Shown here: piece after piece, positions 61,137 to 63,780 of the stretch | Layout: the number at the start of each line of letters is the position of its first letter | Position numbering within the stretch: the first letter of the stretch is position 1 | Assembly: GCA_025558095.1 (NCBI GenBank) | Contig: JAIVFI010000011.1 | Span: 434,001 to 498,000, forward strand | Origin: Hyaloraphidium curvatum SAG 235-1 | Lineage: Eukaryota > Fungi > Monoblepharomycota | Direction: 5' to 3' | Length of the DNA stretch: 64,000 nucleotides | Program-made: the position numbers and the translations under genes | Notes under the pieces: model-generated | What the model was told of the DNA's origin: nothing | Databases searched by the model: none | Seen by the model: the letters and a program-made list of their open reading frames with translations, nothing else

Positions 61137-62503
61137 CTATTCCCCGTCCAGATACGCCCCTTCCTCGGCTTCCGCTTCCGCGAGAGCCTCCTCGATCGCG
61201 CCTTCTTCACCGGCGCCGTCATCGTAAAAGACCTCGTCCTGGTTCGCCTCCGCCTGCATGTCCTGCTCTTCCCTTCGCGCCTCCTCGGCGCTTCTCTGTT
61301 GTTCGCCGCTCTCACCTCGCGGTTCGCTGCTCGCCCGCTCCTGGCGGTCGTCGCGGAAATCGCCGGCTTCCTGCACACGCTCCTCGTCCCGCATGTCGTC
61401 GGCACGGTCGTCGTCCTCCCGCGGAGCACCCTCGGCGTTCTCCCCATCTGCGCCAAACTCGTAGTCCGGTTCCCCCTCGTCGCCCTCCCTCTCGTCCTCC
61501 CCTTCGCCGGCATCGTGGTACGTCCCCTCGTTTTCGCGGAACTCCCCGCCGTCCCTCGCGTCCCGGTATTCCCCTTCGTTCCGGTTGTACTCCTCGCCGC
61601 CGTCCGACCCGTAACGGTATCCGCCCTCGCCTTCGTAGTACGGCTCGGGCTCCGGTTCCTCGGTCTGCGTCCCGGCGTCGGCCACGAGCGACGACCGCGG
61701 TCCGAACCGGCGGCGGTACCAACGCAGCTCCGCGCGGGCGTTGTAGAGGTGCGGCTGGAGGGTTTCGAGATCCGCGTCCAAGTCCACTATGAGCGAGTTG
61801 GCGTCTGCAGCCCCACCAGGACAAACGAGTAAATAATTCGTGGTCAAAAGCCATGAGCGGAGGTAGATGAACCCACCGACAAGGCCCTGCTTGGCCTCGG
61901 CGGCGATTTTCTTCGCCAATCCGAGCTCCACCTCCAGCGCCTCCATCCTCCCCCCGTAGACCAGCTTCCCCAGTTCCTCGTTCTCGCTCTGCACGGCCTT
62001 CAGCTTCCCGATGAGCCGCTTCCCCACGATTCCCTGGGGAGTAAACTCCCGCGCGGCCAGCTCCTCAGTGAGCCGCGCGATTTTTGCGTCCTTTTCCGCG
62101 AGCTGCGCGCGCATCGCGACGTGCAGCGTCAGAAGCGCCGGGTCCAGCAGCTTCGAGGTCAAATTTGTCGAATCCGGGTGCAAGAGAGGCGCGAGCGACT
62201 GCAGCTCCGACTGTACGACGCGTCAGACGCGTCCCCTCCGCGGGCCTCCCGACGCACCAGCAGGTTCTGCACCTCGGCCTCCTTCCTGCTCAGACGGATC
62301 AGCAGGTTCGCCTCCCTGCCCTGGTACTGCTTCTTGAGCGCCGCGATTTCGCGCCGCAGCTCTTCGGCGTCGGCGGGACTGCCCGGCGCGGCCTTGGGCG
62401 TCGTCGCCTGCGCGGGCGTCGGCGCGGCGCGCTTCGCGGGGCCGCCGGGCTGCGGCGGGTCGGCAGGCCGCTTGAACGCCGCCGGCGCGGGCGCGGACGC
62501 CAT
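61137..62503 (-). CDS. WTAP: WTAP/Mum2/FIP37 m6A-methyltransferase complex subunit, with acidic tail
   Basis: REANLLIRLSRKEAEVQNL, LLDPA, EELAAREFTPQGIVGKRLIGKLKAVQSENEELGK, GRMEALEVELGL. Confidence 0.88.
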
Positions 62504-62617
62504 GATGCGGGCGGGTCGTGGTCCGAAGGGTGGCCGGGAACCGCCACCACCTGCCTTCCACCAAATTGGTGTGTGCGCTTAGAACATCTCTCCTCTTCCT
62601 CTCCCCCACCACGGTAG

Positions 62618-63599
62618 GAAAGAGCGCGGGACTTTCGCTCTCGAATTCGGCGAAGAAGAACTGTTAATATTTCGGATCCCGGACCTTTGCTGCCTTTGTC
62701 AGAGGTGTGGTCGGCCCGGATGCTCGTCGCGATGCACAGGACGACGCTCGTAGGGAGAAAGCACAGTCGTTGATGAAGCGGACTAGGACTAGGACATTGC
62801 AGTTTTGTAGTCGAGATGCAGGCCGGCGATGCAAGGGTGGATGGGCGCGTCCTAATTGGAAGTGGCGAACTGGCTGGATGACGGCGCCGCAATCCAGCCA
62901 ATCAGCAGACGCTGCTATGGAAATCAGCGGACGCTGCTATGGAGTCAGGAATGGTTCCACCATCTGTAGACTAGATTTGGACTGGCGCCGGAGATGGAGC
63001 GGGTGCTCGACGAGGCTGATCGCGCAGCAGGGGCAGAACAGGCGGCCGCAGAGGAGCAGGCACAGCAAGGCGGACCAGCAGCTGATGGGCAGCACGAGGA
63101 GGACAAGGAGCGCGCGCGGCGCGAGCAGCGCAACGCCTTCATCGCCGGCAAGGTCAAGGAGGCGGTCGAGAGCCTCAGGGCTGAGCTTGCCGACGGCCGC
63201 AAGGAGCACTACAACCCGATCGTGCTCATCGGCGACGGCGGCCATGGCGGGCGAACCCCGGATCCTGACTCCCTCGCCGGGTTCCTGATGCGGCTGTTCC
63301 TCGTGATCTTGCTCGTTGAGTGGGGCACTTCTCAGGTAGGCTGGAGCGTTCTGCACCTGCGTGACTTTGGCTGACGCATTTCCCAGCGCTGCCCTTCGTG
63401 CTATTCGCAGCTACTCCCTACCGATTACCTCCACATCAAGCTCTGCCCCTCGTGCCCCGGGCATGACAGTACCGGGAAACTTAAGGTCGAGAAGAACGTT
63501 TCGGCGACTCTATGCTTTTATCGAATCTTTCTACACATCCTGGCAACGGGCACGCGGCCTCCGGCCTTCCGTGACCCGACTGCCAAACTCAATACCTGA
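62618..63599 (+). pseudogene. Degenerate Fanzor (eukaryotic TnpB-like RNA-guided RuvC nuclease) remnant with a spliceosomal intron at 63336-63386
   Basis: The spliced product reads PIVLIGDG...FLVILLVEWGTSQ|RCPSC-x14-CPSC...VEKNVSATLCFYRIFLHILATGTRPPAFR, i.e. RuvC-II Glu, Cys4 zinc finger, RuvC-III region and an RP-x-x-F tail. A candidate RuvC-I (TVNISDPG) lies at about 62660-62683 in another frame. Confidence 0.75.
62900..62943 (+). repeat. 22-bp tandem duplication
   Basis: AATCAGCAGACGCTGCTATGGA followed by AATCAGCGGACGCTGCTATGGA (1 mismatch). Confidence 0.9.
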
Positions 63600-63780
63600 C
63601 AAACGAACCAGGTACTTTAGCTGAATGCGTGAGTGCACTGTGGTCGTGCATCGTGGATAGTTTACTCATGCGATAAGCTGTTTCGTGGAATTTGGTGTCC
63701 ACCGTTGTGTTTGGTGGCGGTTCCCGGATTCCGTAGGTCCGAACGATTCACGACCTGCTGCCAGCCAGCAGGCATCAGCG
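63600..63780 (+). ncRNA. Candidate Fanzor omega-RNA scaffold (structured non-coding segment)
   Basis: Nested stems ACGAA/TTCGT, AGCT/AGCT, GCGTGAGT/ACTCATGC and TGCAC/GTGCA, plus hairpins CCACC/GGTGG, CGGATT/GGTCCG and CCTGCTG/CAGCAGG, directly after the Fanzor-like stop. Confidence 0.4.

Follow-up and report, generated by a model that had tools for sequence, protein, structure and literature searches.

A probable mobile element carrying a Fanzor1-type module, and its deleted remnant, in the fungus Hyaloraphidium curvatum

What kind of gene is represented by a short, intron-split reading frame in the genome of the fungus Hyaloraphidium curvatum SAG 235-1, and what can be left of its function? 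The frame lies in a stretch of 64,000 nucleotides (nt) of GenBank assembly GCA_025558095.1 (contig JAIVFI010000011.1, forward-strand positions 434,001 to 498,000), here called the window, in which positions 62618-63599 had been interpreted from the letters alone as a cryptic Fanzor/TnpB-like RNA-guided nuclease locus (the initial annotation). The analysis described here shows that the encoded peptide represents the C-terminal end of a Fanzor1-type module, consisting of a RuvC fold and a zinc ribbon. With a probability of roughly 0.75, the locus represents a non-autonomous copy, shortened by an internal deletion, of a low-copy mobile element of 8.9 kb that occurs in H. curvatum and whose large gene ends in this module. 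The genome holds two subfamilies of related copies, subfamily A, to which the window copy belongs, and subfamily B. Contigs of the genome are cited as C2, C8 and so on, the window copy being on C11.

The coding part of the window copy consists of the following features.

62994-63374, plus strand: remnant open reading frame (ORF) of 126 aa, of which the spliced part ends in ...WGTSQ, followed by in-frame read-through into the intron
62994-63335, plus strand: what is left of the large exon (114 codons), with 97-98% identity to C2 exon residues 411-529
63318-63320, plus strand: codon of the relocated RuvC-II Glu (...VEWGTSQ), in a column that is invariant Glu in a 50-sequence alignment (A4)
63336-63386, plus strand: spliceosomal intron of 51 nt, with GT at 63336-37, AG at 63385-86 and branch site CTGAC at 63371-75
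63387-63599, plus strand: last exon, 70 codons (63387-63596) and TGA (63597-99), encoding the zinc ribbon (TNB) and the RuvC-III helix
63495-63497, plus strand: Asn codon AAC at the position of the catalytic RuvC-III Asp, local reading K-N-V-S-A

The positions given in the initial annotation proved right for the ORF, for the GT..AG intron of 51 nt and for the second exon of 70 codons. The start that it gives for the locus, position 62618, coincides with no definable boundary, homology to other copies beginning at 62664 and a possible insertion junction lying at 62521-62549. The ATG at 62994 corresponds to a Met inside the full-length gene, and the ORF of 126 aa is thus no more than the remainder of a 529-codon exon. 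What is preserved of that exon (62994-63335) encodes a helical linker, the relocated Glu and, where RuvC-II used to be, a stretch rich in Gly. The predicted splicing is supported by sequence comparison with intron-less paralogues and with a locus from another organism, L061. In alignment A1, the frame of four intron-less paralogues is unbroken at the intron site (...TSQ followed by (R/I/L)CPTC...), and every copy of subfamily B reads through ...TSQ(R/I/L)CPTC... precisely at the intron position of subfamily A. L061 has an intron at the same codon as the window copy: exon 1 ends in ...TSQ, after which GTAGGT follows, and a separate second product of 86 aa begins with the zinc ribbon. The L061 contig (Logan SRR26194948, 106 kb, GC content 53%) carries an A-type element adjoining Zn_clus, PAS_13 and GST genes.

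The last exon of the window copy is 88-96% identical to that of other A copies and 52-57% to subfamily B, and aligns to the C-terminus of PpFanzor1. Of the motifs that had been listed for it, the two CxxC pairs are present (encoded at 63390-63401 and 63444-63455), whereas the proposed (R/K)D-x-x-A reads K-N-V-S-A. The RuvC-III Asp is absent from this copy because the codon concerned is AAC.

Assignment of the peptide to the TnpB/Fanzor group, with Fanzor1 as closest relative, was borne out by profile searches, by Pfam matches of relatives and by the predicted fold. A profile of the C-terminal region of the family (A1), searched against 1.84 billion representatives, retrieved 237 proteins at E <= 1e-3, 81 of them at E <= 1e-10, in which the domain is nearly always located at the extreme C-terminus. 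Sampled matches carry PF07282 (Cas12f1-like TNB), in one case above the cut-off (28.3 vs 26.3 bits). The top match, KAI9027716.1 (P0001), is a protein of H. curvatum itself and is encoded on C8. When alignment A4, which covers the last ~410 residues, was searched against PDB sequences, the matches were the Fanzor1 proteins of Parasitella (PpFanzor1, E 5.1e-12), Guillardia (GtFanzor1, E 3.9e-11) and Spizellomyces (SpuFanzor1, E 9.8e-9), followed by LaTranC (E 4e-7), ISDra2 TnpB (E 2e-4) and mimivirus L79 (E 2.8e-3). An AlphaFold (AF2) model was built with A4 from residues 2040-2449 of P0001, thus from the sister subfamily B and not from the window fragment, and had a predicted local distance difference score (pLDDT) of 78 and a predicted template modelling score (pTM) of 0.77. 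Significant Foldseek matches of this model were Fanzor and Cas12 proteins only. Alignment with VIA-align gave Z scores of 13.1 for SpuFz1 (241 residues, 4.2 Å, chain 363-633), 12.0 for PpFz, 11.3 for CasPhi and 9.0 for TnpB.

Less sensitive approaches returned little. For PF07282, one B ORF scores no higher than 16.9 bits, and there was no Pfam match for the full A exon or for other long A ORFs. Searching PDB by single sequence gave no match, nor did a word-indexed protein search with the A exon or with a canonical Fanzor of this genome; tblastx of A against B produced only noise in this GC-rich DNA. The window exons alone have no Pfam match above threshold, the best being Zn_ribbon_TFIIB at E 0.15, and the case for homology therefore rests on the paralogues and the profiles. 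Such sub-threshold matches are what a chance ORF with an unrelated zinc finger could give, and the initial annotation itself had named a better match to an unrelated zinc-finger family, or no profile or structural match at all, as an outcome that would speak against its assignment. Instead, the profile searches, the Pfam matches of relatives and the fold point jointly to Fanzor, TnpB and Cas12, by which the chance-ORF explanation is already refuted for practical purposes.

It had been suggested that an intact family may exist elsewhere in the genome, and alignment of their flanks had been proposed as a way to define the element. Both proved fruitful: the C2 copy is full length, and the copies share a common 3' end, with direct repeats of 10-17 nt at four of them.

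Subfamily A copies: C2, C30, C13 and the window (C11), with an older fragment at C2:508k
Subfamily B copies: C8 (two), C31, C14 and C5, with fragments on C15 and C17
C2 copy: flanking direct repeat of 10 nt, exactly at the ends
C30 copy: flanking direct repeat of 14 nt, exactly at the ends
C13 copy: flanking direct repeat of 16 nt, exactly at the ends
C6 copy: flanking direct repeat of 17 nt, exactly at the ends

The full unit at C2:944780-953668 measures 8,889 bp and is the sole full-length A copy; those on C30 and C13 carry other deletions than the window copy, and the C6 copy is a solo 3' end of 160 bp. In five A copies (C11 window, C2, C13, C30 and C6) the 3' end, ...CCCGGATTCC, is identical to the base, and in four copies it is directly followed by GTA. 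The 5' start point varies among the A copies, and in C2, C13, C30 and C6 a C/T-rich tract of 19-57 nt is found between the duplication and the first homologous base. Judged by the ratio of nonsynonymous to synonymous divergence between copies (dN/dS 0.19-0.51), the copies are under purifying selection. That the 3' tail is held in common with an abundant LINE was ruled out, as the terminal 20-mer is present only in the five A copies.

It could be argued that these copies form a small host gene family that has spread by segmental duplication, with the window locus as a decayed duplicate. Copy number is indeed low (five A, about seven B), no transposase domain is recognised, and the near-identical B copies on C8 (C8:319108-332501) and C31 (minus strand) have at least 13.4 kb in common, with 95.6% identity over 12.4 kb. 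However, all A copies stop at the same 3' base, four of them have unrelated flanks bracketed by the 10-17-nt direct repeats, even the 160-bp solo end on C6 has its 17-nt duplication, and the 5' start points differ from copy to copy. This makes spread by segmental duplication a very unlikely explanation. The block shared by the two B copies exceeds the giant gene described below by ~5 kb, and its extra ORFs have no Pfam match.

As to the mode of mobility, duplications that are long and variable, truncation on the 5' side, an unvarying 3' end and the retention of an intron together recall target-primed insertion; a non-LTR or Penelope-like retroelement was considered on account of the duplications, the truncation and the intron. 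Against such a mechanism, no abundant element has the terminal 20-mer, and searches for a reverse transcriptase, an endonuclease, a transposase or a ribozyme were negative: long ORFs of the A element and P0001 gave no reverse transcriptase or endonuclease family at E <= 1, and neither the tails nor the full element matched a hammerhead or other Rfam family. Terminal inverted repeats are absent from the full C2 copy, and no target duplications were found around the 5'-truncated B fragment on C15.

Against this background, the window copy can be described by the following features in addition to its coding part.

62521-62528, plus strand: possible left target-site duplication, GGTCCGAA, the same 8-mer occurring at 63736-63743
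62534-62549, plus strand: left arm of a perfect 16-nt inverted repeat, 100% complementary to 63712-63727
62588-62612, plus strand: C/T-rich tract at the 5' junction, seen in the sequence
62664-62983, plus strand: retained 5' terminal region of ~320 bp, 84% identical to C13:271342-271709
62900-62943, plus strand: two tandem 22-nt repeats in the 5' region, found by repeat search and present in the C13 copy too
62983/62984, no strand: internal deletion junction, at which ~7.9 kb of the element is gone
62984-63735, plus strand: the last 750 bp of the element, with 95.5% identity to C2 across 751 bp
63600-63735, plus strand: conserved non-coding 3' tail of 136 nt reaching the element end, a candidate guide-RNA scaffold or possibly an intron in the 3' untranslated region (UTR)
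63736-63743, plus strand: possible right target-site duplication, GGTCCGAA, directly after the 3' end

By homology the remnant measures 1,069 bp, or ~1.2 kb when the junction repeats are counted. The left side of the deletion junction matches the C13 copy up to L045:5710 and the right side matches the C2 copy from L044:8220; the microhomology at the junction is 1 nt. Splicing was ruled out as the cause of the deletion because splice signals (GT/AG or CT/AC ends) are lacking in both orientations. Within the 5' region, positions 62745-62848 show 90% identity to the 5' terminus of the C2 copy, and a 15-nt palindrome at 62871-62900, also from the repeat search, precedes the tandem 22-nt repeats. 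The C13 copy has a tandem duplication of ~62 nt in its 5' terminal region (C13:271426-271573, L045:5427-5574). The 16-nt arm on the left belongs to a stretch of ~45 nt that repeats the 3' terminus of the element in inverted orientation, positions 62534-62549 being a reverse copy, with 3 mismatches according to a pattern search, of the 3'-terminal 20-mer. The remainder of 62505-62680 is unique in the genome.

The only reading frame of the remnant is the tail of the large gene of the element (184 codons, 114 + 70). Its exon-1 piece is nearest to C2 (synonymous divergence, dS, 0.012) and its exon 2 to C30 (dS 0.038), a mosaic that suggests exchange between copies. The deletion removes RuvC-I and everything upstream of it, in agreement with the earlier remark that the N-terminal half is missing here, and because of this loss the window copy is unable to make a working protein. 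It may still be transcribed from its retained 5' end. On the left the remnant is bordered by a gene of the WTAP/Mum2 family (61137-62503, minus strand; PF17098, 79.7 bits). Since the ATG of this gene, at 62503, is only 18 nt away from the left junction repeat, the remnant sits in its promoter or 5' UTR.

Some points weigh against regarding the locus as a remnant of a mobile element with a Fanzor1-type module. The repeat flanking the window copy is only 8 nt long and thus weaker than the 10-17 nt at the other four copies, its exons lack a Pfam match of their own, as mentioned above, and Pfam scans detected no transposase, reverse transcriptase or integrase domain in the element. Because of the latter, the designation mobile element rests solely on copy structure and flanking repeats.

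A second question is whether the module can cut DNA. In A4, the columns of the RuvC-I Asp, the Gly and the Glu are invariant, and that of the RuvC-III Asp nearly so. The Gly column (…IGDGG…) and the Glu column (…VEWGTSQ) are 30 columns apart in A4 (30-40 residues), and each is aligned with its counterpart in PpFz1. Fanzors possess a rearranged RuvC-II, in which Gly or Pro takes the place of the canonical Glu and a conserved Glu lies further downstream (PMC10530073), and by alignment the Gly-rich site with its downstream Glu matches this rearranged site. When the best 150 A1 matches were aligned to the family model, the relocated Glu column contained Glu in 144/145 homologues, and the RuvC-III column Asp in 134/141, Asn in six and His in one. 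The six Asn homologues (P0001, P0002, P0004, P0009, P0025 and P0049) are the nearest relatives of the family, and K-N is read in all A and B copies and likewise in L061. A complete Asp-Glu-Asp triad was thus not found, RuvC-III having Asn, and the window copy has lost RuvC-I as well. The change must be old, given that identity between A and B is only about 50% and that the Asn is also found in other organisms, and this state has been kept under purifying selection (dN/dS 0.19-0.51).

With Asn at RuvC-III throughout the clade the catalytic signature is not intact, which makes the label RNA-guided nuclease, as used in the initial annotation, doubtful. Little or no RuvC cutting is the more likely reading of these residues, and it has its own difficulties: Asn can sometimes still bind metal, and the strict retention of Asp and Glu argues against a fully dead site. 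Because these two residues have not decayed, the site is not called certainly dead. It may even be supposed that the intact family works as an active Fanzor1 nuclease of the ordinary kind, in which the Asn is tolerated or compensated and guide-directed cutting serves homing as in TnpB. The invariant RuvC-I Asp and relocated Glu, which persist even in this clade, would fit with this, as would the purifying selection and a conserved, stably folding 3' tail that runs exactly to the element end, as omegaRNAs do (PMC10432273). On the other hand, Asp is present in 134/141 homologues and its replacement by Asn is confined to this clade, there is no conserved acidic neighbour of the Asn (two residues upstream A has Glu and B Asn), and Fanzors already depend on one relocated residue (PMC10530073). 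An ordinary active nuclease is therefore considered unlikely. Literature searches yielded nothing specific on Fanzor in Hyaloraphidium or on inactive Fanzors.

A third question concerns the protein to which the module belongs. Instead of making up a compact Fanzor, the module turned out to be the C-terminal part of a very large protein, of 2,449 aa in the annotated sister subfamily. P0001 aligns over its whole length with the second C8 copy, from which it follows that in subfamily B the Fanzor module consists of the ~400 residues at the very end of a giant protein. It is immediately preceded by two CX2CX6CX6CX2CX6C motifs (P0001 ~1977-2045; C8:~88-89 kb), and this double motif matches PF00172 (Zn2Cys6) with 25.7 bits, against a cut-off of 21. 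In subfamily A, the 200 residues upstream of RuvC-I contain no Zn2Cys6 motif. Detectable similarity between A and B is confined to the last ~120 residues, and the first A ORF aligns only weakly with the B N-terminus (hhalign E 1e-3, probability 20%). The A element is filled with long ORFs on the same strand, colinear with L061 genes over at least 3.7 kb. In the parts of A and B upstream of RuvC-I no WED/REC half was recognised, nor any Pfam match except the Zn2Cys6 motifs of B, and the structural match to SpuFz1 begins at residue 363.

The region P0001 ~150-560 looks like a FEN/XPG (PIN-like) domain by its motifs YVDG, YLES, EADGH and SSDRDLLYM, with a possible counterpart at L044:618-1400 in subfamily A. 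A protein language model (ESM) lists Pox_G5 and XPG_I as look-alikes of this region (score 0.85), which is a lead only. Neither a PDB profile search, which was empty, nor the AF2 model of the P0001 N-terminus, too poor at a pLDDT of 43, confirmed this resemblance.

This architecture raises the possibility that RNA guidance was lost and that the module is now a protein-only domain, for DNA binding or scaffolding, with which a giant transposon protein ends, and that targeting is done by the Zn2Cys6 domains. In favour of this, the Zn2Cys6 pair of subfamily B immediately precedes the module, upstream there is no recognised WED/REC half, the part in which SpuFz1 holds its guide, and the B tails have no unusual RNA stability. 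Subfamily A speaks against it, since the motif is missing there from the 200 residues concerned and the A 3' tail is conserved like coding sequence and folds well. A protein-only role is rather unlikely on balance.

The tail itself is 92-99% conserved among copies, as conserved as the coding sequence. The fold of positions 63560-63760, which include the last codons and the tail, has a z score of -4.25, and 0/200 shuffled sequences were as stable. In Fanzor loci the omegaRNAs occupy a similar position at the 3' end (PMC10432273); the tail resembles them in this respect and is a candidate guide RNA by analogy. Observations that weaken this candidacy are that the copies are too alike to give covariation support for the fold, that the subfamily B tails are not unusually stable, and that Rfam gave no match for the tails. 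An OMEGA system, as had been suggested for an intact family, is inferred where the RNA guidance of the family is concerned. Because a donor-like motif follows the stop codon and five A copies end in AG, the tail could instead be a 3'-UTR intron. Motifs resembling a 5' splice site (GTGAGT, GTACGT or GTGGGT) occur 8-35 nt past the stop in A, B and L061, namely at 63609-63632 in the window, just past the stop in L018, L021 and L022, and at L061:6275. The motif CTGAATGNGTGAGT is common to A and to two of the three B lineages (C8:332k/C31 and C14/C5), the C8:89k copy being the one without it.

Taken together, a tentative proposal, to which we would give somewhat less than even odds, is that the module in the intact relatives would serve as a DNA-targeting module at the end of a very large protein. 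It would be guided by an RNA derived from the conserved 3' tail, its RuvC cutting would be slight or absent, and the chemistry would be left to the host or to other regions of the protein. Prokaryotic precedents for such use exist. Cas12k is a nuclease-deficient Cas12 that works with Tn7 proteins, and TldR proteins are nuclease-deficient, TnpB-derived transcription factors (PMC10705468). As in these, a TnpB-family module with a damaged RuvC triad is conserved under selection, a likeness that suggests targeting without cutting. There are differences as well: TldR and Cas12k are prokaryotic, and TldR is compact and no longer found in transposons, whereas the present family is fungal and still resides in a repeated element, and only one residue is changed in it.

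It is also useful to compare the family with Fanzor1 proper, of which SpuFz1 (8GKH), PpFz1 (9CF0) and GtFz1 (9CER) are its best matches in sequence and structure. Shared properties are the RuvC fold with an inserted helical region, the CxxC..CxxC zinc ribbon between RuvC-II and RuvC-III, the C-terminal R-P-x-x-F motif, a Gly at the former RuvC-II site that is followed by a Glu some 35-45 residues later, the presence of spliceosomal introns, a fungal host and a conserved non-coding tail that reaches the element end. Unlike Fanzor1, the whole clade has Asn instead of Asp at RuvC-III, the WED/REC half is not recognised, and the module ends a far larger protein (2,449 aa for P0001 vs 400-700 aa for Fanzors; PMC10432273). 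The long and variable flanking repeats also differ from those of the DNA transposons usually linked with Fanzor1.

The same genome contains canonical Fanzor1-like genes at C2:397554 (L028:1183-2979, minus strand), C2:426655 (L030) and C5:336026 (L029). The first is a compact single ORF of 599 aa with a PF07282 score above the cut-off (32.4 bits), and the ORF at C5:336026 has a zinc ribbon (PF07282, 24.7 bits). The two genes on C2 show the same order of motifs, ...EHGSS.xC..C...C..C...NRD.NSA...RP..(F/Y), and unlike the family of the window they keep the RuvC-III Asp (N-R-D). In a pairwise BLASTP comparison with a B ORF, C2:397554 gave an E value of 0.001, with ~27% identity over 89 residues and colinearity over the motifs. 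A 199-aa frame with a sub-threshold PF07282 score is present in at least 10 copies, nine at 22.6 bits and one at 23.2, at loci that include C5:5540, C3:632898, C6:426117, C6:603866, C7:383875, C7:469872 and C11:292854; it may be another zinc-ribbon-bearing repeat family.

Fanzor1 in fungi has already been described (PMC10432273, PMC10530073), so that the family is to be seen as a variant, marked by the RuvC-III Asn and a giant multidomain protein, and not as a new or undescribed eukaryotic OMEGA system. A bolder idea, which at present must be regarded as quite improbable, is that there is a fungal clade of giant (>2,000-aa) element proteins in which a Fanzor1 module with Asn at RuvC-III acts in RNA-guided targeting and is fused to Zn2Cys6 domains and a FEN/XPG-like nuclease that would do the cutting. 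If true, insertion into breaks that are staggered or primed would account for the 5'-truncated copies as well as for the great and variable length of the target duplications, and the clade would be a eukaryotic counterpart of the repeated re-use of nuclease-poor TnpB and Cas12 modules by prokaryotes.

The window copy itself is a dead and ordinary remnant, and its value is that it leads to the intact copies, C2:944780-953668 and the gene of KAI9027716.1 on C8. Fanzors are the only known RNA-guided DNA nucleases of eukaryotes and their natural role is still open (PMC10432273). A clade in which two catalytic residues are kept and an Asn is fixed at the third, under purifying selection and in giant proteins inside elements that bear insertion signatures, offers a natural case for what a Fanzor module does when it is not cutting, or is cutting differently.

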